Shown here piece by piece: positions 7,195 through 62,507 of a stretch of DNA of 64,000 nt. Under the pieces are notes generated by a model that was given only the letters and a program-made list of their open reading frames with translations, had not been told where the DNA came from and searched no databases. The translations under genes were made by a program, and so were the position numbers. Position 1 is the stretch's first letter. Every line of letters begins with the position of its first letter. This DNA is from Mobula hypostoma (Eukaryota): assembly GCF_963921235.1 (NCBI RefSeq), contig NC_086114.1, positions 27,900,001-27,964,000 of the forward strand. Reading direction: 5' to 3'.

Positions 7195-10100
7195 AAATCT
7201 ATTTTTGGAATGTGGGGTATTGCTGACAAGATCAGCATTTAATGCTCTTGCCCTTGAGTCGCGTTGGTGAGCCACCTTGATCTGTTCTATTGTAAAAGTA
7301 CTCCCACTATTATTGGGTAAGGAACTGAAAGATTTAGCACCCAACAACAGTAAAATAATGGTAATATAGTTCCAAGTCAGGATACTCTGCAATTTGGAGG
7401 AAACATGTCGGTATTAATAGAAACATAGAAACATAGAAAATAGGTGCAGGAGTAGGCCATTCGGCCCTTCGAGCCTGCACCGCCATTTATTATGATCATG
7501 GCTGATCATCCAACTCAGAACCCAGCCTTCCCTCCATACTCCCTGACCCCTGTAGCCACAAGGGCCATATCTAACTTCCTTTTAAACATAGCTAATGAAC
7601 TGGCCTCAACAGTTTGCTGTGGCAGAGAATTCCACAGATTCACCACTCTCTGTGTGAAGAAGTTTTTCCTAACCTCGGTCCTAAAAGGCTTCCCCTCTAT
7701 CCTCAAACTGTGACCCCTCGTTCTAGACCTCCCCAACATCGGGAACAATCTTCCCGCATCTAGCCTGTCCAATCCCTTTAGGATCTTATACGTTTCAATC
7801 AGATCCCCCCTCAATCTTCTAAATTCCAACGAGTACAAGCCCAGTTCATCCAGTCTTTCTTCATATGAAAGACCTGCCATCCCAGGAATCAATCTGGTGA
7901 ACCTTCTTTGTACTCCCTCTATGGCAAAGATGTCTTTCCTCAGATTAGGGGACCAAAACTGCACGCAATACTCCAGGTGTGGTCTCACCAAGGCCTTGTA
8001 CAACTGCAGTAGTACCTCCCTGCTCCTGTACTCGAATCCTCTCGCTATTGTTCCTCTGTATCTGCTTCCCCTATTATTATTGCTGATGAGGTGCTGCACT
8101 AGCAAGTAGTGTTCAGAATAACGTAAGTGCTGTGAGTTTTGATTATTGTGCCAGTGATGGAGAGAAAGTATGAGATATAATTAATTATATGTTGGTCAAA
8201 CCAGCATTTTGCCTTGGATGTTATGGAGCTCATTAAGGTGACTAAGTAGCACTCATCCATGCATGTCATGAATATTCCATCATATACCTGACTTATGTTT
8301 TGCAAATGGTGGAAAGATCTTGGGAATCAGATTGTGATTCACTCCTGGGAGTATATCCAACCTGATACAGTTGATTGTGTTGAATTTTCTATAAATGGTG
8401 ACCATCTCCTCCTAGGGTATTGGTTCTGGGGGACAGTGATGGCAATGTCACTGGATATCAAGGGTAGGATTAAGTTGTCCCATTAAGCAGCACCAGCCTG
8501 AATTGTGTTCAGGTCTGGTCACATGCAGGTTTGGGTTGTTTCATTTCCAAAGAAGTTGCATATGAAGTTACACATTGCAAAATCTTCAACAGGCATTTCC
8601 ACTTTTGACTGTGATGGAAGGGAAGTCATTGATGATTGAATCAAGGTTCCTGTGAGGTCTGAAGCTAAACTAAGCATTATTAAACATACTGATCGCACAA
8701 AAGACTACGTATGCTGGAAACTGGAGCAATACACAAAACGCAGGAGAGCTCCGTATGGATTTGGCAGCACCTGTTGAGAGGAGAGGACAGTTGACATTCC
8801 TGTAGAAACCCATCAGTTTTGTTGGAGGCACAGCTATTTCTGGAACTTAAGACTTCTCAATTAAAAGCAACAAATCTAGTTCCATAGTTGAATCAGTCAG
8901 TGATTTCATGATATCATCTGAAATTACATAGTTTGGCTCAAGACTGACTTCTGTAATGTTGGAGACAGGATGGAGCTCAGGTGGACTTGCATGAAGATGA
9001 CCTAAGGTGCTTCAGACCTGTCCTCACATGTTGGTTTCAACATTACTGAAGATGGGATTTTTTGGAACTTCGTTCCCCTGTCAGCTGTTGATCAGTTTAT
9101 GGTTATTCACAAGTGCTATGTCAGGACTGCAACTCCACCACAGACGGTCCCAAGCCCAACTGTGAAAAGTTGTTTACAAGGCAACTTTACCATGCTTCTT
9201 TTACTGTTGGCATGCACGTCGTTAATGTAGCTTCGTTGTGTTGGTGCTTCATTTTTTGGTACACCTGGTGCAGCTCCTGGCCCACCCTTCTACTTTCTCC
9301 ACTGATCAGGGGGCTGAATTCCTGGTTTGATTGGTAGAGCAATCAGTGGAGTGAGGGGTCACAAGATTAACTTATACTGAAATACAGTTATGCTTTTGCT
9401 GATAATCCACTGTTTTGAACTAATAAATCAGTTCCAATCAACCCCATTCAGCGCAATAGAGGGGGTATGGGACTGTCTCCACAACGATTAAGTGATGCTC
9501 ACTCCTAATAATTTTGTCATGGACCAGTGCATCTCCAACCTAAAGATTGGTGAGAACAAAATCTATTGCACTTCCTTCATTTTGATTCACTCACCACCTC
9601 CTGCAAACTCAATCTGCCAGGTGTTTCAACTTCTGTAGATGCTCTCAAACATTCAGGTTCCTCATCAGGGCCCATTCTTTCACCTTGCTAGTATCATTTC
9701 CAATATTACTCTACATTGGAGAGCACAGATTCTTTAGCTGAAAGAGAACTGCAGGAAGTTCCTCTGTCTATAGTTGACCTGATAACACAGAGAGTTAATA
9801 TTAAGCCCTCCCCCCCCCAACAAGGCCATCCTTCCTGCCTATATATCATAGTACAATTATCTCTGTTGGCTCTGAACTGTGATACAGAATGTACCAGGGG
9901 CTGTGATGGAGGAGTCTTGAATATCTGCCAAAACAATTCTCTGAATATGACACCAGGCTCTTGCTTGACTAGAGTGGGACAACTCTTCCAATTTAGCTAA
10001 AGGTCCACAATTGATCATGGGAAAGATTTTGCAAAGTTAACTGGATTAAGAATGATTTGTCCATGTCCAACTCTCATTCTGTTTTAAAGTAGTTTTATTT

Positions 10101-24876: not shown

Positions 24877-27800
24877 CATAGAAACATAGAAAACCTACAG
24901 CACAATACAGGCCTTTCGGCCCACAAATCTGTGCTTACCTTAGAAACTACTGAAGGTTACCCATAGCCCTCTATTTTTCTGAGCTCCACGTACCTGTCCA
25001 GGAGTCTCTTAAAAGACCCTGTCGTATCCACCTCCACCACCGTTGCTGGCAGTCCATTCCACACACTCACCACTCTCTGCGTAAAAAACTTAATCCCTGA
25101 CAGCTCCTCTGTACCTGCTTCCAGGCACCTTAAAACTCTGCCCTCTCGTGCTAGCCATTTCAGCCCTGGGAAAAAGCCTCTGACTATCCACACAATCAAT
25201 GCCTCTCATCATTTTATACACCTCTATCAGGTCACCTCTCATCCTCCTTCGCTCCAAGGGAAAAAAGACCAAGTTCACTCAACCTATTCTCAAAAGGCAT
25301 GCTCCCCAATCCAGACAACATCCTTGTAAATCTCCTCTGCACCCTTTCTATGGTTTCCACATCCTTTCTGTAGTGAGGTGACCAGAACTGAGCACAGTAC
25401 TCTAAGTAGGGTCTGACCAGGATCCTATATAGCTGCAACATTACCTCTTGGTTCCTAAACTCAATCCCACGATTGATGAAGGCCAACGCACCATATGCTT
25501 TCTTAATCACAGAGTCAACCTGCGCAGCAGCTTTGAGTGTCCTTTGCACTTGGACCCCAAGATCCCTCTGATCCTCCACACTGCCAAAAGTCTTACCATT
25601 AATACTATATTCTGTCATCATATTTGACCTACCAAAATGAACCACCTCACACTTATCTGGGTTGAACTCCATCTGCCACTTCTCAGCCCAGTTTTGCATC
25701 CTATCAATGTCCTGCTGTAAACTCTGACAGTCCTCCACACTATCCATTACACCTCCAACCTTTGTGTCATCACCAGATTTACTAACCCATCCCTCCACTT
25801 CCTCATCCAGGTCACTTATAAAAATCATGAAGAGAAGGGGTCCCAGAACAGATCCCTGAGGCACACCACTGGTCACCGACCTCCATGCAGAATATGACCC
25901 ATCAACAACCACTCTTTGCCTTCATGCCTCCTTACTTTCTCAATAAACCTTGTCTGGGGTACCTTGTCAAATGCCTTGCTGAAATCCATATACACTACAT
26001 CTACTGCTCTACCTTCATCAATGTGTTTAGTCGCATCCTCAAAAAATTTAATCAGGCTGGTAAGGCATGACCTGCGTTTAACAAAGCCATTCTGACTATT
26101 CCTAATTATATTATGCCTCTCCAAATATTCATAAATCCTGCCTCTCAGGATCTTCTCCATCAACTTACCAACTACTGAAGTAAGACTCACTGGTCTATAA
26201 TTTCCTGGGCCATTTCTACTCCCTTTCTTGAATAGTGGAACAACATCCACAACCCTCCAATCCTCTGGAACCTCTCCTGTCCTGGATGATGCAACAATGA
26301 TCGCCAGAGGCTCAGCAATCTCCTCTCTCGTCTCCCACAGTGGCCTGGGGTACATCTTGTCCAGTCCCAGTGACTTATCAAACTTGATGCTTTCCAGAAG
26401 CTCCAGAACATCCGCTTTCTTAATACCTACATGCTCAAGCTTTTCAGTCTGCTGTAAGTCATCCCTACAATTGCCAAGATCCTTTTCCATAGTGAATACT
26501 GAAGCAAAGTGCTCATTAAGTACCTCTGCTATCTCATCCGGTTCCATACACACTTTTCCACTGTCACACTTGATTGGTCCTATTCTCTCACATCTTATCC
26601 TCTTGCTCTTCACATACTTGTAGAATGCCTTGGGGTTTTCCTTAATCCTGCTCACCACGGCCTTCTCATGGCCCCTTCTGGCTCTCCTAATTTCATTCTT
26701 AAGCTCCTTCCTTCTAGCCTTATAATCTACTAGATCTCTGTCATTACCTAGTTTTTTAAACCTTTCGTAAGCGCTTCTTTTCTTCTTGACTAAATTTACA
26801 ACAGTCTTTGTATACCACAGATCCTGTACCCTACCATCCTTTCCCTGTCTCATTAGAATGTACCTATGCAGAACTCCTTGCAAATATCCCCTGAACATTT
26901 GCCACATTTCTTCTGTACAATTCCCTGAGAACATCTGTTCCCAATTTATGCTTCCAGGTTCCTGCCTGATAGCCTCATATTTCCCCTTACTCTAATTAAA
27001 CACTTTCCTAACTTGTCTGTTCCTATCCCTCTCCAATGCTATGGTAAAGGAGATAGAATTGTGATCACTATCTCCAAAATGTTCTCCCACTGAGAGATCT
27101 GACATCTGACCAGGTTCATTTCCCAATACTAGATCAAGTACAGCCTCTCCTCTTGTAGGCTTATCTACATACTGTGTCAAGAAACCTTCCTGAACACAAC
27201 TAACAAACTCCACCCCATCTGAACCCCTCACTCTAGGGACATGCCAATCGATATTTGGGAAATTAGAATCTCCCACCACGACAACCCTGTTATTGTTACA
27301 CCTTTCCAGAATCTGTCTCCCTATCTGCTTCTCGATGTCCCTGTTACTATTGGGTGGTCTATAAAAAACACACAGTAGAGTTATTGACCCCTTCCTGTTC
27401 CTAACTTCCATCCACAGAAACTCCGTAGACACTCCTTCCATGTCTTCCTCCTTTTCTGCAGCCGTGACACTATCTCTGATCAACAGTGCCACGCCCCCAC
27501 CTTTTTTGCCTCCTTCCCTGTCCTTTCTGAAACATCTAAAGCCTGGCACTCTTAAGTAGCCATTCCTGCCCCTGAGTCATCCAAGTCTCTGCAATGGTCA
27601 CAACATCATAGCTCCAAGTACTGATCCACGCTCTAACCTCATCCACTTTGTTCATAATACTCCTTGCAATAAAATAGACGCATCTCAAACCATCGGTCTG
27701 AGTGTGGCCCTTCTCTATCAATCTGCCTATCCTCCCTCTTGCACTGTCTCCAACCTTTCTCTATTTGTGAGCCAACCGCCTCTTCCTCCATCTCTTCAAT

Positions 27801-50545: not shown

Positions 50546-53181
50546 TCATTCCTGGAGTGTCCCTGGTCTCCATGTATGAGAACCGCTTCCACCCCTCACA
50601 GCCGAGAACCTTGGCCTGGGGACGGGGTTCAACGACTTCTTTTGCATTTGCACATCTTCTTTAGGTGGGAACTGAAGCAGTGAAGGTTCTAAGCTTACCT
50701 CTGGACTTTCTCTAGGTGCCCTCCCGTATTCCTGAATCAGTCCATTTCCGTGAGATACTTTGGGCGATGCTGGTGGTGGAGAATTAGGTGCAGACATCCA
50801 CACGGGCTCAGCAAGTGTGGTGGCTGACCGTGGGGCAATAACTGTGGGAGTGACAGTAGGCACTGGGGTGGAAAAGCGTCTGATCTCAAAGGCTCTCGAT
50901 GTCTTCACGGGAACTTGCTTTGTGGAGACAAAGGACTGTTGGCTGAGTGGTATGCTTGGCGCACCTCCTGACAAACCCTGTGATCTCACATTGGATTCAT
51001 CGAAACTGAACATGGCCGGATTTAATTGGTAGGGTTGACGTCTCATGAAATCAATGGCTTTTATTCCCACCTTTTGGTTGCTTGTTGGCTTCCATTTCTT
51101 CTCCGTTTTGGAGGCAGATGCAGCTTGCGACCTGCTGGCTGCTAATGGGTATGACGGGGAATAAATGGGATTATAACCGATCGGAGGTGGAGCCCGGATG
51201 TTGGGAGAATATTTCCATGTAGCCGGAAGGGAAGGAGTGGGAGATGGCCCTCTTGACTGAGGAGAGCTCGAAGGCACCGAATCAATGACAAACTTATCCA
51301 TGCGACTTTGTCTCTTAGCAAAGAGTTCCGCTCCCTTCCCCTTCAGCTGCAAGGTTACTGGTGGGTTGGTTCCATTCACTGCAAGAGAGCCACCACCAAT
51401 TAACTGAGGCTTTAAGTAAGGCTTTGGGGCAACTGGAGGGGGAATACTTTGCCTGCGTGCCTGAGACTGCATAAAATTGGAAGCTTCAGCACCAAGACTC
51501 AGAAAGTCTTCCTCTGGGCCTGATTCGAATCCCACTCCAGCATGGTCTGGCTTTTTCTCATCCAGGTTTTGTACCAGGGAAAGAAGCTCGGGGTTTGGCG
51601 AGGCTTTTTTCTGTTCAGTCTTTGTAAACATTGGCTTCCTGGTGCTTCTGCGACGAGCCTCCTGTAGGATGCCAGTTTTAGAGGCTGGCACTGAAATTCT
51701 TTGCTCTCTCGTGGCCAAGCTTTCTAATGGCTGGTTGGCTGCCCAGGCTGGTGATGAAGTGCCCCCAACAGTGTTCACTGCAGATACGCTCTCTCTCTGT
51801 GGCAGCAGTGTTGAGGAAACGCGAAAGATAGCCGTGCTGGTGACCGGAGCCTGAGGTGCCGAATATGGAGTTGCTGTGAGCAGTGATGTCATTGATGGAG
51901 GTGGTGGTGACATCATTGCGGGTGGTGGTGACATCGCTGCAGCTGGTGGTGACGTCACTGCAGTTGGTGGTGATGTCACAGTGGTTGGTGACACCGTGGT
52001 TGCTGCAGTGTTTGGTGATGTCACCATGGGTAGTGATGACATCACTGTGAGTTCTGCTGGCTTCGGTGCACTCGATAGTAAAGGAACAGTGGTCGGCGGT
52101 GACATTGCCGTAGGTGGAGGTGACATCACTGTGTGTGATGGTGACATCACTATGGCTTGCTGCGACACCTTTACAGGTGGTGGTGGTGACATCACAGGAG
52201 ATGGCGGTGACATCACAGCAGCTGCTGGCGAATAAGGGGTCTCCATTCCCACTGCTGCTGAAGCTTTCATTGGTTCAGATTGAGTAACTGCACTCACATT
52301 TGGGCTGGAGACCAGTGCTGTTGGATGTGCGAAAGATTTGGTTAGTTTGTTTTGCCCAGTAGTTTGTTCCCAAGGCTTTGGAAGTGACGCGTTTATTGTA
52401 CTACGCCGATATAGCACTGGAGCAGAGACTGAGTGCAAAGAGCTCACGTGGCTCTGCTGTAATCCTGGAGTGAATGGTCTTGCTGTCCAATTTGCCACCC
52501 CAGGGAGGCTAGGAGAACCTTGTACAACATGCTGTGAACGCTGCTGTTCACTTGGCCTTGGCAAAGTGGTCTCTGTGCGCTCCCTTGGCGACAGATTCAT
52601 TTCTGTATAATAGTTCAATGTATCTGAAGCTGGAGTCCCAGCACCTACAGTCGTACTCCTGGGCCAGGTCTGGACTTCGTTCGTCGTGGTGTAGCTCATC
52701 ACTTCAGCCTCTGTCTTAGGTTTCACCTGTAGACTGTCTGGTGTCTGAACTGGAGGTTCCTCCAATATATACTCCTTTGCCCGTTGTCTCTGATGTTCAA
52801 ATAACCTCACACCCTTCCCTTTGGTTTCAGTTAAACCCTGGGGCTCAGATTTGGGCTTTTGAATGTCCAGGTAAGAACTGTCCCAATCTGATCCCATTGA
52901 CTGATTCGTCAAACTTTTTGCATCAGAAAATGCCTCTTCATCAAATTCAGACTCACTAGTTGGCAGAAGCTCTCCGTCCTCGTCGATGCTCTGCTTCTCC
53001 TCGTCCACACTCCCATAACTAACAAGGGTGTACTTCTTTGCCCTTTGACGCCGTTTCTTAAACATAAGAACCCCCTTCGAGTGAGGATTGGGTGCAGAGG
53101 TAAGGAGGGAGGCAATGGTCTTGCATTTTGACTTGGCTTCCTTGGCTTGTTTCTCCTGCACACTTTCACTCCGATGTAGCT
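50546..53181 (-). CDS. SYNPO2L: SYNPO2L large terminal coding exon (2636 nt including stop)
   Basis: ORF 50546..53161 extended to the acceptor ctttgcag|AG CTA CAT CGG AGT GAA AGT. Synaptopodin motifs include KCKTIASLLTSAPNPHSKGVLMFKKRRQRAKKYTLVSYG, ESGPEEDFLSLGAEA, KGKGAELFAKRQSRMDKF, WKYSPNIRAPPPIGYNP and PRPRFSA...WRPG. Confidence 0.95.
51880..52225 (-). repeat. Coding degenerate ~21-nt tandem repeat (x-x-[VA]-[MT]-S-P-P) within SYNPO2L
   Basis: About 12 copies of ggtgacatc/ggtgacgtc-like cores on the + strand. Peptide units VMSPP, AMSPP, VTSPP, MMSPP. Confidence 0.85.
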
Positions 53182-53469: not shown

Positions 53470-53955
53470 ACCATGGAGGGCATTCACAGTTCGCATCACC
53501 ATATCAATGGACGGGCCACTGCACAGGATCAGGGAAAGCTGCTGGGGTGGGGTGGGGGTGATGGTTATGGGTTCACTCGGCTCCGTCATGGGCTCTAGCC
53601 TCGCCAGCATCGAGGGCATCTTCAAAAGGCAGTGCCTCAATAATGTGCCATCCAACACTATATATACCCCCACCACACAGAACATGACTCCTTCTCATTT
53701 CTGCAATCAGAGTGGTAGGTCAGGAGCTGAAGACACACGTTCAATGTTTTAGGGACAGCTTCTTCCCCTCCACCATCAGATTTCCGAAATACAAATATAA
53801 ATACAATAAACTACAATAAGAAATACATACACACACAAACTATATATATTTCTTATTGTATTTTATAGTAAATTTTATGTATTGCACTCTATTGCTGCCA
53901 TAAAACAACAAATTTCATGACTTCTGTTAGTGCTAATAAACCCGATTATGATTCT
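53470..53955 (+). mobile_element. Rex1/Babar-like LINE 3' fragment in SYNPO2L intron
   Basis: GSSLASIEGIFKRQCL, ggacagcttcttcccctccaccatcagattt and an aataaac.cgatt tail. Confidence 0.7.
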
Positions 53956-54825
53956 GGGACAGAATCTCAGACCAGGACTGTGAAGAAGGGAGCGCAGAGG
54001 AGTGAAACAAGCTTTGGTCTTTAGGGGGAATCAACACCAGTTGGGAACAAAGCAGCAGTTTGAGAGAGCATGGAGAACCCTTTGATTTTGATGAACAGGC
54101 TGAGGCAGGTTCTGGGTTCAAGCATCTCTCCAAAGCCAAAGCATTAAATCTAGATTGCCTCTTCAGGGGTTACTGCATTGTTACAGTTGCTCCAGATGTG
54201 AAGCTCAACCTTCTATGCTCTCCGGTGGACTTAGAAAAAGAGTTGTATAGTCCTCCTCGGTGCCCTGGGCAATATTCGTCCTCAAGCAACGTCACTGATA
54301 GAGACTAAAAAGCAAAACAAAATGTAAGATGCTGGGCACTTTAAAATAAAAAGGAGGAAATGTTGTTGATATTCAGTAGGTCAGGCAGCATCTGTGGAGA
54401 GAGAAAAAGAGTTAATGTCCTTCACCAGAATTTTAGCATTTTCTACTTTAATAACAGGGATTACCTGGTTGTTATTACCTTGGTGGTGCCTTGCTAGCAC
54501 AAGCAGACTGCAGTGTTGCACAAATTAAAAATGGGATTGTACAACACCAGATTACTGCAAAAAACAATGCAGAGTCCTAATCGCAAATGACCAATATACT
54601 TGATGGCTGCACTCCTCCGAAGGTAGACAGATGCTGGAGGGATGATCTGATTGTTATACGAACCTTACCTGAACCAGGACTGTGCAGCAAGTGTCACACT
54701 ACACACAGGAGTTACTTCACTCTACATCACCCTGTATTCAGCAACATAATGATGAATTATTTGAATTTCAGGTATCTATACACAAAACATTACTTTTAGC
54801 AACCTGTGTCCAAAGTATTTAACGT

Positions 54826-55934: not shown

Positions 55935-57620
55935 GCAGCATTAAATCACCTATCCCAAATTGCCCTTGAGGAGATAATAGTGAGCTGTTTCATTTTTAAA
56001 CCATTGAAATCCATGAAGGTGCCTTTTAGGAAGTTTCAGTGTTTTCCCCAGCGAAGTTTCATGCTAGTATGGCCTGACAGAGAGTTTGGGAGTGGTGCTT
56101 CTCTCAGTCACCTGCCATCCTTGACTTTCCAGGTGAAGATTCTGGTTGGAAGGTGCTTCCAAAGAATCCTTGCCAAGCAATGACAGTTTATAGCCACAGT
56201 GCTCCAGTGTTGGAAGGTGTGAGTCCTTCGGATAGTGGGAGGGATGAAAAAGTAATGGCGGGGTACTTTGCCTTGGATAGTATCAAACTTCTCCAGCTTT
56301 CCTGGAACTTAACTCATCCAGGCAGGTGAAGATTATGGCATCACTCTCGTTTAGAAGTTGGAATAGCTTTGAGAGGTCAGTGACTCCCTCTCTGTAGATG
56401 ATCAAACGCTGACAACCTACGAGGCCTCACTGCAAGGATTTTCATAACCAGTGCTTGTTCTAAAAGAACTATCCAGAGGTACATACTCTCCAATTACCTA
56501 CTGACTCACATTCAGTCTAGATTTCACCCAGATTGCTTGGCTTCATATCTCAACATAAACTTAGCCCAAGCAAGCAGACAAATTTTAGGGGTCTGGTGAC
56601 AGCATTTGCTCTAGGCACCAAGGCAGTAAGTCTGGCATCCGAATCATGGTAAAACTGAAGTGAATGAGTATCAAGGAGAAAAACACTCTGATAGCTCACA
56701 TCTTGCTTCACACTAAATACGTTGGTTGTAATTGTTGGAGGTCAGTCTCCTCAGCCCTGAGGCCTCACTGCAAGAGTTCCTGGGGCTTTGTCTTAGAGCC
56801 AGAATCTTCTGCATCTTCATCAGTGACCATTATTCCTTCATAATGAGCCATGGGATATCTGGACAATATGATGATCAATATGTTGATAATTTGACAACAT
56901 TTAATTCTATTTTGTACCTCCTCAGCAAATAAAGCAGCTCATGCCTCCATGCCTGATACAAACTTGGATAGCAGTAAATGTCAGGTAACAGTTGCACCAT
57001 AAGAGTGCCAGGCAATGGTAAGCACCAACAAGTTAAACTACCCCTTGATCTTTGATGACATTGCTGTCTCTCAGTTCTATTTCATCTACTCTCTGATAGT
57101 CACTAATGGCTGGAAACTCAACTGGGCCAGACACATAAGTATGGTAACTACAAATGCATGTCTGAATATAGGTATTACACAGTAACTTACATCTGACACC
57201 TTTCTACAATTGAATAACAACATTCAAGAAGCTCAGTATCATCAAGGGCATAGTAGTCTGCTTCATTTCAATCCTGTCCACCATCCTGTATTTTAACCTC
57301 TCAGGCCTCTTAAGTTTGTATATTTATAAAGTCATTTGGAATGATTTGTCTAGGTTACTCCAACAGTAATTAGAGAACTTGTGACCTCTAATGCTAGGAA
57401 TGACAAGGGGAACACAACTACACGAAAGTTCCCCAAGTCATACAGCATCTTGACCTGGAATTATATCACTGGTTGTTCATTGTTGGTAGGTCTAAATCCT
57501 AGAATTCCCTCCCCAACCTCACTGAGAGCATCTTCATCAGAAGGGCTGCAATGGATCAAGGAAGTGGCTCATCATCTCCTCCTCCAGGACAATTACAGAT
57601 GGGCAATAATTGCAGTGACA
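55935..57620. mobile_element. Old LINE remnants (same family as 7195-10360), in both orientations
   Basis: cagcatt...atcccaaattgcccttgag on one side and ILTWNYI (ORF 57381..57629) on the other. Confidence 0.45.
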
Positions 57621-59481
57621 CCCAGATAACAAAATAAAAGAATATGAACAAATTATGGATGAATGTCAACAGACTGGAAGTTTACATTAATTAATCTTCT
57701 GAGATGATTAAGGAAAATCATTCTACAGCAAATTGGTCATGAATAGCGCCAAGACACAGCTCTGATTCTGTGTTTTAAAATGTTACTGTTATCTTTTCAT
57801 CTGACCTTGTGATAAGGTAAACTCAGTTTACTCTATAACATACCAGTTTATTGCAGCATGGTGATCGGTGCTGACGTGTTTGGCACAGACAGTTGTATCT
57901 AATAACTATTGACATATGTGGGAAACTAAGGCATTGAAACATTTCTGTTTGTTACAGGTTCAGAAAATTGCATTTCTGAAAAACTTACTGAAGAGATTCC
58001 GGAAACACTTAATCCAGGTAATCTTCATATATTTGTTTATTTTTGGTCATCCCTGAATTTGGTTTTCCTAAAACACTGATATGAAATGAACAAACCTGGG
58101 CTGCCCTGCTAGAAGCTAATGCAGAGTTCACTCCACTTCATGCAACAAAAGATATGGTTTATCTTGAGTGGCGGTTAAATACGAGACAAAACAAAATGTT
58201 AGTGTACCCAGATGATTAACATATCAGGGCACATATACCAGAGAACTGCCTGATGGGTCTAGGTGTGAGAAGGCCATGGGTGAAGAGGACATATAGCCAT
58301 AAGCCAGTGATGGGGCCTGGAATTAGGGCCAGGAATGGAAACTGCAAGAATCAGAATTAGATGAGAGATTGCAAAGAAGAACTGGGGCCCAGAGTTGAGG
58401 GGCAGTGACCAAATGAGTGGACAGTGGGAGTGGAGAAGAAGGATAACTGGGACCTCCAGTGGCAACTTGGGGAATAACTGGATCAAGGATTTAGACTTTA
58501 TCAGGATACAGTGACTTGTAAGGGAGGCTTTTAAGTAGCCATTTGGATCACAGTCTTTTCCTTGGTTGGTCCAGACCATTGAAAGGGAATCGGAGGCTGG
58601 AGGGCTTTAGAACTTGGGTCTTGGACTATGGGGATAAAAGTGCCTTATGGCTGTGAGGGTTAATGATTAGAAAGTTAAACGTAGTTGTCCCAAGAGTATT
58701 GTTCCCTGGATAACTTGGTCTAGTTTTTCTTGAGATGTTCCTAAGGAGCTCTGCATTGAGAATGTTACATCAAACGATGCAGAGTTCCTATCAGGCATGT
58801 AAGGTCAAGTCATTTCAAGAAGTCCACAAGTTAACTTCTGGAATACTCCAAAATTATGAAAATGACAAACACCATAAATAATGATATTTATACTTCACTT
58901 ATGGAAAAATTCATTTTAAACCCCATGAAACTGGGAGGGGAAAATTATTTCAAATTTTTAGATACTCATATTAATTTTACTACACCAGCCACCAATTAGA
59001 AATAAAATCTCCCCCTTCTTCGACCAGTTCAAAAGACTGGTGACTGATAACTATCACAGTTCAGTAACAATAACATGGCCCTGCACAGAAAAAAAGCCAG
59101 ATTTTTTCTTTGCTGTCTCAGAGATAAACCTCCACAAACAAAGTTTCACAGAGCAATTATTTGAGTTAATTTGCAATGCAGAGACCTTCAGCTCAATTGA
59201 AACAGTATCCCTGTTATTTCTAACCAGGTAAGATATACTAAACCTTTTGTACATCTATTTCTGCAGTAAAGAATATCCAAGAAGAAACTAAAATTTCCAT
59301 ATCTTTTTGCTAAATAAATAAAACACATCAAATGAAATAACATTATGCTAAAATTCTGACTTTCCACCTTACTTTAGATTATAGGCATGAAACCAACTTT
59401 GGTTGCAAAACTTTTATACACAGTACAGAATTCATCGTAAAATCAGCTAACACATTCAAATATACATACACATTCAAATAC

Positions 59482-59581
59482 CTGCATAAATTTGATGGTT
59501 GCTGGTGTTCTTTTTTGATTGAGTTTGTGAGCTTTGCATTCTGATAGCACTTGGACTAATAATCTGTGTTCTCAATTCCAT
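59482..59581 (-). CDS. SYNPO2L: Putative alternative first coding exon of short PDZ-less SYNPO2L isoform (CHAPb-like)
   Basis: ATG in tccATGG context, 33 codons MELRTQIISPSAIRMQSSQTQSKKNTSNHQIYA plus one G, then donor |gtattt. Phase 1 joins the terminal exon to give ...IYAELHRSES. Confidence 0.7.
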
Positions 59582-59707
59582 GGAGAGATTGCAATCTGTC
59601 ACAGTCTGGATTGAGGCCAGGACTGTAAGTCTGCTAAGCTCTCTATCGCTTTTTACTCCCCTTGTCAGACCAGACAAAAGGATGGTTGAGAACTTCTGTC
59701 AGTTCAA

Positions 59708-59717
59708 CTATTTTTAC
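59708..59717 (-). promoter_or_regulatory. MEF2-like A/T-rich site upstream of the putative short-isoform first exon
   Basis: CTATTTTTAC, a 9/10 match to YTA(W)4TAR, ~127 nt upstream of the ATG at 59581. Confidence 0.4.
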
Positions 59718-60842
59718 CCGGTTACATACCAACTAGTTCTGTGATGGAAACAAGCATCTGTCTGCGCTCACACTGACCTTCAGGAGATTTTTTTCCGGGA
59801 CAAAAGCTATTTCACCAAAAACAACATATTGTGGCAATTGACACAAGAATGAATGTGACAACGTCTTTGACAAAGACGTCATAGAAATACTTCTCAGCCT
59901 TAACTTTGGGATGAGCAAGAAAGCATTGTTTCAAAATTCAGGTAAACATGGTCAAATGCTGAATATACTTTGAATCTATAAATTGCTCCCAATGGGGAAA
60001 AAAATCTGCAAATTGTAGCAGTGCCTCATTTCAACAGGGCAATTCTCGTCTCCATGTAGAATTTAAGGCATGTTTAATTTTAAATATGAGATGCTTAAAT
60101 AGGTCATTGGTGTCAGCAGTTCATGAGCATTAGACAAGATATGCCTCTTTATCTGTAACTCTCCTTGATGGCATTGCAATGTACTAAAAACGACTCCCTC
60201 AAGCCTCAACCCCATGCTCAGCCTTTGATTTTCTGTCAACGCATTCCCCCACTCCCTTCCCCCTGTCTCTACTCATCACTGCAATCCAGCACTCTAAAAT
60301 TCCTTATAAAGCTCTTAACCTTACTGCCCTGATCTGCATTTCTCAAAGCCCATGACCAGCAGTCACAAAGCCTCACTTCCAAAGTGTGTGTGTATATATA
60401 CGCACATATATACCTACCCTTTGCTGACATCACCACTACCCACATCCCACCATAGTAATTAGTTTTGAATCTAATTACTTTAATGTGTTAGGTGATTTTT
60501 CGATGGAAGTTAGAATTCTATTTTATTCCAAAAGCTTTAAAGGTTCACATCATTATAGGCAGCTAGAGAGAGAGGGAGAGAAAAATCAATGTCAACATCA
60601 ACCAGCTATCACAGTCGGTATGTTGAAACAGTTTTAGTCTTGTCCCACCTACAATGACATCACCCAGACTATCAAGTAACAGATAGCAACTCAGGCGCTT
60701 TTCAGAGAGTTGACCTCATATCCTTTAGACCTTTTTCCCAGCTCATGTTCCCCTAAATAGCAGCACACAGAACAAGTCAGGAGAGACATCAGAGTTTTAA
60801 ATCACTTAAGGTCGTCTTGGAAGGTATCAAAATAAAACTTAC

Positions 60843-61708
60843 TGGCTTGCTTGGCCTTCTGTTTGTAGGTGGTCGTCAGCGCCTCATCCACGGGGTTGTT
60901 GACTGGGCCCACCATGGGCACCAGCTGCGTCTCTCTCAGGCTGGGCACGCCGGCGGCCGGCAGCAGCTTCTGCTCAGGTGAGCCAGCGTGGGCGGGTACC
61001 TCCTGAAATCCGCTGTCAGCTTCCGATGTGCCCAGGTTGCCCTGTCGCAGGGCGCTGTCCTCGCCGCTGGACTGGGCGGACCAGGTGCTGGCATAGATGG
61101 GGTTCAAGTTGGGATAGGAGGGGTTAGTCGCTGGGTTGCTGGAAATGGGGTGGGTGAGACTGGCGGGGGTGGAAATGGGCTGGGTGATGCTAGGCTTAGG
61201 GTATGTGGCAACCTCCACCTTGGGCTGCCAAATGTTAATCTTGGCTTCCACCTTCCGAGGCTGAAACATCCTTGGGATCGCCCCCTGGGTGAGGCTGGTA
61301 GGCTCCAGCCGGGTGGGCGCTGCTGGTTCCGGCGACAAGGGGCTCAGGGGGCTCCAGACGTGCTCCGGGGCGCTGTCGTACTCGCTCTGCTCCGACGCCT
61401 CATCGGCCGATCCCCGCACCGGGGGTCGGGGACCGGGCCAGCGCCGCCTCTGCCTTCGCTGCCTCTCGCTCGCAGTGTGATCCGCGTCACTGTCGGTCTC
61501 GCCGTAGTAAGCCTCGCTGTCCGGGGGCGATGTGTAGCTCTCAAGCTGACTCCTGAGTCCCCTGGCGCCGCTGGCCGCTTCCTGCTTCACACTGGGGGGT
61601 TCAGGCATCTGCCGGGGGGCTTTTGAAGAGTCTTGGCTCCGTGCACGGGGGGCGGTGGCGAGGCCGGCCTCAGATTGAAAGCTGCCAGTTGCCGGGTTGG
61701 ACGTCATC
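60843..61708 (-). CDS. SYNPO2L: SYNPO2L coding exon (866 nt)
   Basis: Lies within ORF 60802..61707. Contains SPPDSEAYYGETDSD and LVPMVGPVNNPVDEALTTTYKQKAKQA, which are SYNPO2L-like motifs. Acceptor tcttctag|G, donor GCCA|gtaagt. Phase 2 to 1. Confidence 0.92.
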
Positions 61709-62507
61709 CTAGAAGAGGATTCAAGTTACTGGGATCAGGAGCTTTGGAACAATTGAGCATGATGGACCTGCACCCTCCTGGATTACTGACATCTCACGGG
61801 CCTATATGAGATAAGTGGGCAAGGGCGTCCCAGCGAGTGCCAGAGTCCCTCCACCTCATCCCTTTCCTCCAGCTCATATAGGTACACTTATAGAATGAAT
61901 ATAGGAATCTCCAGGAAGGTTGTAGGGTAGGGGCATGCAAAGTAGAGGTAGCAGTTGGTTACATAACTCCTTCCAGTCTGATCCAACACTTACCTTTCCT
62001 CTTTGATTCCCATAATCCCTGCTATCCCCATATCTTCCAAATGTATCTCAGGCTGAGATGTACCTAAGAGATTCTCAGCCTTGACTACACTTGATGATTC
62101 ATTCCCACCAATGCCTCTCTAAGCCAGAGGGGTTCAACATTCCTCCAGAGACACATTGTGCTTCAATTATTTAACCACTGGGAACTTGGCCAGTACATGT
62201 GAGTACAGTGTTCAGCTATGAATGTATCATAAGCCCATCTCGGCTTCATGCTCATGCTTAGTCAGGTTGACGTGCCTGAAATAGAGATGAAGGACAGGAT
62301 CCACAGGAAATATCTCACCACAATTGCACTGAGGGGCTTTGGATTCCCCACCAAACGGAATAACATCTCTGCATTTACTGTTATCATATTCCTTTATCAT
62401 TTAACACAAATTAATTGGGTTTCCCAAACATCTAAACATAAAAGGAGTATAAAATATTTTTATAAAGACCCCATTTTTAAGCTATCTGCATGGTTCATAT
62501 TTGGTAC

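Follow-up and report, generated by a model that had tools for sequence, protein, structure and literature searches.

The stretch of DNA analysed here (64,000 nucleotides of Mobula hypostoma, referred to as the window) carries the SYNPO2L gene of a myliobatid ray on the minus strand. The best database match of the gene was the synaptopodin 2-like protein of Mobula birostris, with 98% identity, and the M. hypostoma, Hemitrygon and Hypanus sequences fell into the same 90% cluster. SYNPO2L, also known as CHAP, is a Z-disc gene located at a risk locus for atrial fibrillation. Its common terminal exon (50546..53181, minus strand) starts with AGCTACATCGG and comprises 877 codons and a stop; the frame is open from 53181 through all of these codons, and the stop lies at 50546. 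The acceptor at 53181, ttgcag/AGCTACATCGG, is preceded by the letters ...ctttgcag and is used by both of the isoforms described below. In the long, PDZ-containing isoform, the penultimate exon occupies approximately 60843..61710 (minus strand), and loose contig ends were found at 60843 in all four of the RNA runs studied. The donor of this exon, GCCA/GTAAGT at 60843, joins 53181, and the resulting junction reads AKQA-K-LHRSES. The last intron between these exons (60842-53182) is 7.7 kb long, and it is within this intron that the alternative exon lies. Elsewhere in the window, at 25232-27549 (minus strand), three adjacent ORFs matched Exo_endo_phos_2 and RVT_1 and represent a non-LTR retrotransposon copy in pieces.

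On the minus strand, ctccATGG at 59581 opens a frame of 33 codons, MELRTQIISPSAIRMQSSQTQSKKNTSNHQIYA, which is followed by a single G at 59482; measured from this first ATG, the alternative first exon thus has its coding part at 59482..59581 (minus strand) and ends in phase 1. The GT of the splice donor occupies 59480..59481 (minus strand), and the intron 3' of the exon begins with gtatttg at 59481, the donor being CAG/GTATTT. Splicing from 59482 to 53181 is in frame and gives QIYA-E-LHRSES, with NTSNHQIYAELHR as the predicted junction peptide and a predicted length of 911 aa from ATG 59581. A second in-frame ATG, with an A at -3, was identified from the alignments and the ORF table at 59539..59541 (minus strand). 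Its leader would be MQSSQTQSKKNTSNHQIYA, and a start at this codon would give a predicted protein of 897 aa instead of 911 aa. Either product would consist of the leader and the terminal exon only, lacking both the penultimate exon and the PDZ domain; the PDZ Pfam matches lay in the upstream exons of the long forms. The first-pass annotation of this DNA had described the ATG at 59581, the 33 codons and G, the GT donor and the in-frame 911-aa reading, and every one of these elements was correct in the sequence; the frames that it gave for the PDZ-less QIYA-E-LHRSES junction and for the long QA-K-LHR junction were also as stated. In an intron of 7.7 kb, chance alone would often place an ATG before a short open stretch that ends at a GT. 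Nevertheless, the exon is taken to be more than a chance arrangement, because its junction was found in RNA contigs and because the block containing it is conserved in batoids and in a shark.

The contigs of four public runs (X1, X2, X3 and X6), which carry coded organisms and no tissue labels, were aligned to positions 55950-61900 of the window (5,951 letters). The 6.3-kb gap between 59482 and 53181 spans beyond this aligned stretch, and the junction was therefore read from the loose contig ends at 59482. The canonical junction between 60843 and 53181 was present in all four runs: the contig match stopped at 60843 and was followed by the first letters of the terminal exon in reverse complement. 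Therefore, spliced RNA was present in each run, whatever its record says. In runs X1 and X6, the contig match stopped exactly at 59482 and continued with TGCACACTTTCACTCCGATGTAGCT, the reverse complement of window positions 53181-53157, which are the first 25 letters of the terminal exon. This junction has canonical GT-AG borders and is the one that had been predicted between 59482 and 53181. The two runs came from two coded organisms (A and F) and two studies and were 95-99+% identical to the window. In run X6, the depth of the junction contig was 7.2 versus 11.9 for the upstream exon, although contig depth is a poor measure.

Run X2 came from a more distant ray, approximately 90-95% identical to the window. 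Its contig also broke at 59482 and continued with 27 other letters, which had no match in the window at three or fewer mismatches. They were placed, with 23 of 27 letters in agreement, on a repeat-like stretch at 53757..53783 (minus strand), 600 nt upstream of the normal acceptor, where the window has GG and not AG in front. A junction of the X2 type would read E-I-stop, that is, two codons followed by termination. In run X3, which was letter-identical to the window, there was no contig across 59482-59645 and no junction between 59482 and 53181, and in two other runs of the same organism none of the words of the alternative exon was present. The junction has thus been observed in close relatives, but so far not in the species of the window.

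The assembled contigs, which are unable to show a start site, extended well 5' of the first ATG. The transcribed stretch 59582..60064 (minus strand), delimited by contig coverage, is probably a 5' leader. In run X6, contigs covered 59482-59608, 59630-59793 and 59886-60064 at a depth of 4-7 versus 12 for the upstream exon, and the depth was zero over 55950-59481 and 60129-60725. A single contig was found in run X2 (59482-59957) and in run X3 (59646-60017), and the coverage of 60129-60842 was close to nil throughout the four runs. None of the contigs of these runs connected the donor at 60843 to the alternative exon, whether by a joint or by a loose end. This pattern fits transcription beginning inside the intron, at approximately 59,650-60,100, and it is from these contigs that we infer a start site belonging to the exon itself. 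Because the contigs reached 59957-60064, the start probably lies further upstream than had been assumed in the earlier annotation. If the exon extends to 60064, its leader would hold at least eight upstream ATGs.

The conservation of the region was studied in the SYNPO2L loci of Pristis pectinata (L001), Rhinoraja longicauda (L002), Narcine bancroftii (L003) and the whale shark Rhincodon typus (L004). The exon region was compared in two alignments, A1 and A2, the latter covering the window and all four loci. The batoid introns aligned throughout, with 70-77% identity to the window, and the exon block stood above this intron background at 85%, 77% and 75% (85 versus 77% for Pristis). With the whale shark, only about four intronic islands could be aligned, one of which, 59747-59472, was the exon block. 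The donor CAG/GTATTTGAAT was invariant in the window, Pristis, Rhinoraja, Narcine and Rhincodon, and both it and ATG 59539 were retained in the shark and in batoids of four orders. No start codon other than ATG 59539 was present and in phase 1 throughout the five chondrichthyans; the frame from ATG 59539 to the donor was open in each of them, and the only indel within it was one of 3 nt. ATG 59581 was variable, being ATA in Narcine and out of frame in Rhincodon because of a +1 indel before the donor. Of the features that the first-pass annotation expected to be kept in related chondrichthyans, the donor and the phase were retained along with ATG 59539, while the ATG that it had proposed was lost in one species and frame-shifted in another. 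The Rhincodon comparison also revealed a short stretch at 54344-54418 with many matches on both strands of that locus, and found in L001 and L002 as well, which is probably an interspersed repeat common to sharks and rays.

The conserved leader is approximately 19-20 aa long (MQSSQTQSKKNTSNHQIYA in the window and MQRFQTQESERNAYKHLSYS in the shark). Its variable columns were distributed over the codon positions as 8/12/12, without third-position bias, and there were three to nine times as many non-synonymous as synonymous codon differences. Tested by codon position and by type of substitution, the leader thus gave no sign of selection at the peptide level, which suggests that the leader peptide evolves nearly neutrally, except for its last residues. 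The untranslated and promoter-like parts were conserved to the same degree as the ORF. Considering this and the lack of coding-type substitutions, what seems to be constrained is the start codon, the frame, the terminal residues and elements at the DNA or RNA level rather than the whole peptide.

Upstream of the exon, a promoter-like block was recognised at 59708..59760 (minus strand). It consists of an E-box, CAGATG (59760-59755), the element CCATCAC (59747-59741) and GGGTAAAAATAG (59719-59708), and these three elements were invariant or nearly so in all five chondrichthyans. On the plus strand, the last of them contains CTATTTTTAC at 59708-59717, 127 nt upstream of ATG 59581, and the core TAAAAATA within it was invariant in six species. 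A MEF2-like site had been reported at this distance in the earlier annotation. The site is indeed there; however, it matches the MEF2 consensus YTA(A/T)4TAR at only 9 of 10 positions on either strand, and this putative MEF2-like site (GGGTAAAAATAG/CTATTTTTAC) could equally be a TATA-like box. The composite pattern CAG[AT]TG-N7-CCATCA-N20-30-TAAAAATA occurred once per locus, directly upstream of the exon, in the five loci, including that of the rattlesnake Crotalus adamanteus (L005), and in the window. It was absent elsewhere in approximately 320 kb on both strands. The two-part pattern CCATCA-N20-30-TAAAAATA likewise had a single occurrence in the window and in each of the five loci, lying in every case on the gene strand and directly upstream of the exon, and its chance expectation was 0.05 in the 64-kb window and 0.01 in L005.

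A second intronic block shared by the shark and the rays was located at 60050..60125 (minus strand). It includes TTAAAATTAA at 60074-60083, which corresponds to a strict MEF2 consensus and is also TATA-like, and the string ATTTAAAATTAAAC.TGCC.TAAAT, which was invariant in five species. Because TTAAAATTAA adjoins the upstream limit of the X6 contigs, the second block may be regarded as an alternative candidate core promoter. A counterpart of this block was sought in the Crotalus locus and was not found.

In the Crotalus locus, the leader exon precedes the terminal exon by 3.7 kb and ends at the donor TATGCAG/GTACCC, and its frame extends to an ATG at 9968 (MESWEL...). Approximately 150 nt upstream, at L005:9763-9816, the arrangement CAGTTG-7 nt-CCATCAC-26 nt-TAAAAATAG was present; its counterpart in the ray is CAGATG-7 nt-CCATCAC-24 nt-TAAAAATAG, in the same order and on the same strand. 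This shared architecture was partly recognised after both the ray and the snake sequences had been seen. Unbiased comparisons did not detect it: blastn of the ray block against the Crotalus locus gave no significant match, the local alignment of ray and snake scored 13 versus a shuffle mean of 13.3, and an nhmmer profile of the five chondrichthyan sequences had no match at the snake promoter. Taking the motif order and spacing into account, the ray and snake internal promoters are likely, though not proven, to be orthologous. The annotated Crotalus protein, KAK9400539 (761 aa; L005 10001-52569), joins the exons of the short isoform to small exons 20-38 kb downstream and looks like a fused model; of the two in-frame ATGs (9968 and 10001), it is the second that has been annotated as the start.

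Short SYNPO2L isoforms are known from mammals. The human gene has three start sites, and its short protein isoform combines a unique first exon with the common last exon, while two further two-exon forms from the same intron have been called lncRNAs (PMC11477451). In the mouse, the fetal form without the PDZ domain is CHAPb (749 aa), which has been detected as protein and whose re-expression leads to cardiomyopathy; zebrafish and chick are said to express CHAPa only (PMC5716575). Short isoforms of other species were collected here by a length-limited protein search, the search with the N-terminal region having given two proteins only. The leader of placental mammals is 33 aa long, METFEPISQEPLSQASCDKAPDPVPELQDPFYA-ELQRAES, and ends with ...QDPFYA-ELQRAES, which agrees with the mammalian leader given in the first-pass annotation. 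Marsupial leaders end with ...ERQDQPYA-E and that of Crotalus adamanteus with ...KHLDQPYA-E. The leader of grass carp isoform X2 (P0182) is MRSFTSPGEVEHERHIYA-E, ending with ...HERHIYA-E, and ray leaders end with ...HQIYA-E or ...HHIYA-E (...NHQIYA-E in the window). The Ensembl model of Callorhinchus (A0A4W3HDB7, P0136, 874 aa) has a differing leader, MTMSVVKLF-E. Between ray and mammals, leader identity was 21-26% over 33 aa, and the alignment of ray and amniote starts was ambiguous. The donor consensus accounts for part of the A-E ending; the Y and the graded H-x-I-Y-A / P-Y-A series exceed it.

The design of the ray form is that of mammalian CHAPb (749 aa in the mouse; 753 aa in humans, SYNPO2L-201). 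Like CHAPb, the ray form would have two exons, with a unique first exon in the intron before the large last exon; both are spliced in phase 1 to the same acceptor, giving E-L[HQ]R[SA]ES, and the predicted ray protein likewise lacks the PDZ domain. The leader also ends with YA-E in both; placentals have 33 aa, as does the ray when its leader is counted from the first ATG. Of the leader length and the terminal YA that the first-pass annotation took to be kept, the YA-E ending is shared, and the length is shared with placentals if the first ATG is used; the conserved ATG 59539 gives a leader of 19 aa. In contrast to these likenesses, the rest of the ray leader is unrelated to that of CHAPb, the conserved ray start may be the second ATG with its 19-aa leader, the ray 5' leader may be long, with many upstream ATGs, and the ray form is known from RNA contigs and sequence. 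The human lncRNAs SYNPO2L.N1 and SYNPO2L.N2, from the third start site, resemble the ray form in having two exons, in originating from the same intron and in using the common last exon; however, they have been described as non-coding and primate-restricted (PMC11477451), whereas the ray exon has a conserved in-frame ATG and is itself kept across chondrichthyans. KAK9400539, carp P0182 and Callorhinchus A0A4W3HDB7 are, like the ray form, PDZ-less models with E at the junction to the terminal exon. Crotalus shares the upstream motif block of the ray, although its model is fused to downstream exons, and the Callorhinchus leader is unlike that of the ray.

The short form was absent from existing ray annotations. 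The NCBI models of Mobula were 1245, 1172 and 1159 aa long in M. birostris and 1252 and 1179 aa long in M. hypostoma, and the 911-aa form was not found in these isoform sets. Among the database clusters examined, there were no models of approximately 890-930 aa for rays or sharks and no short model for Mobula, Hypanus, Hemitrygon, Pristis, Narcine or Rhincodon. Other PDZ-less Mobula isoforms were already present at NCBI, namely X3 (1159 aa), whose start, MTSSPATG, lies within the penultimate exon, and X2 (1172 aa), which has the extra leader MGIAGIMGIKQER. In addition, in the region of 61681-61887 and 60802-61707 (minus strand), a contig of run X1 crossed the acceptor at 61710 into the upstream intron at a depth of 67 versus approximately 770-900 for the exon. 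Because of these NCBI isoforms and this contig, a third start site directly upstream of the penultimate exon is plausible. The annotation of Rhinoraja longicauda (L002 1-20482) splits SYNPO2L into a 403-aa PDZ part and a 971-aa part that starts with MVGPVNNPVDEV inside the penultimate exon.

Taken together, these data make it probable that the exon is a genuine alternative first exon of SYNPO2L in a myliobatid ray, with the two-exon design of CHAPb. It is very improbable that it is instead an internal cassette exon, or a retained piece of intron, of the long transcript. TTGCAG, a possible acceptor, does lie just 5' of the ATG region in Pristis, Rhinoraja, Narcine and Rhincodon, and general intronic coverage was seen in runs X1 and X3. 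However, the window has CAA where the others have TTGCAG, the contigs did not connect 60843 to the exon, the X6 contigs upstream of the exon were fully genomic with zero depth over the rest of the intron, and inclusion after the 60843 donor would meet a stop, as read from alignment A1. Less remote, though still unlikely, is that the exon is transcribed and spliced but that the RNA is mainly non-coding or regulatory, like the human two-exon lncRNAs, and yields little or no PDZ-less protein. Such RNA forms of the same design do exist in humans (PMC11477451), and this explanation would accommodate the contigs running 400-580 nt 5' of the ATG, with at least eight upstream ATGs added, as well as a leader ORF without a coding signature, the unconserved first ATG and the different acceptor joined in X2 with its E-I-stop reading. 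It is harder to reconcile with a frame from ATG 59539 to the donor that was open in each of the five chondrichthyans, always in phase 1 and with a sole indel of 3 nt, and that continues after splicing through 877 codons of a known protein. The YA-E ending is common to the protein-coding short isoforms of mammals, snake and carp, and mouse CHAPb has been detected as protein (PMC5716575).

The exon could also be coding and real, yet not orthologous to the first exon of CHAPb. In that case, internal first exons would have arisen independently, and YA-E would follow from the donor consensus (..GCA G/GT). This possibility is doubtful, although it is given somewhat more weight than a non-coding role. 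The diversity of leaders, including MTMSVVKLF-E of Callorhinchus and several teleost and bird leaders, is in its favour, as are the low ray-mammal leader identity (21-26% over 33 aa) and the lack of significance in the unbiased ray-snake DNA searches. The donor consensus CAG/GT alone favours S, P, T or A before E. On the other hand, the three-part motif has the same order, strand and near-equal spacing (7 nt; 24 versus 26 nt) in ray, shark and snake and occurred nowhere else in approximately 320 kb, and the leader endings grade from H-x-I-Y-A-E in carp and rays to PYA-E in snake and marsupials. On balance, therefore, orthology with CHAPb is what we infer, and it is rather likely that PDZ-less SYNPO2L/CHAPb is not a mammalian feature and that the internal promoter is at least approximately 450 million years old, with a core (E-box, 7 nt, CCATCAC, 24-26 nt, TAAAAATAG) conserved from cartilaginous fishes to amniotes. 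This view is supported because the motif block is shared by ray and snake and because YA-E endings were found in several vertebrates, among them marsupials, snake and grass carp; the first-pass annotation had likewise proposed a two-promoter architecture of deep age.

If the exon is a CHAPb-type first exon, transcription would start within the 7.7-kb last intron, at approximately 59,650-60,100. The exon would end at the donor after 59482, and the common terminal exon, from 53181, would follow it in the mRNA with no other exon between them. Translation would begin at ATG 59581 or at ATG 59539, the latter being more likely the conserved start, and would give a PDZ-less protein of 911 aa or 897 aa, respectively. 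The block formed by the E-box, CCATCAC and TAAAAATAG would be the likely core of a muscle-type internal promoter, to which muscle factors may bind. The same block upstream of the CHAPb-type exon of the snake would then point to orthology of the internal promoter throughout the jawed vertebrates.

The type of isoform is known and short models are already present in some non-mammalian annotations, and in this respect the gain is incremental. The gene models of rays would be corrected by adding an unannotated short isoform. An ancient origin of CHAPb, if true, would contradict the published claim that non-mammalian orthologues express CHAPa only (PMC5716575). It would also provide a candidate promoter core of approximately 55 nt that is testable in vertebrates generally, the human locus included. 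If the short isoform and its promoter date to the ancestor of jawed vertebrates, the switch between PDZ-containing and PDZ-less forms would be an old and conserved regulatory device rather than a mammalian peculiarity.
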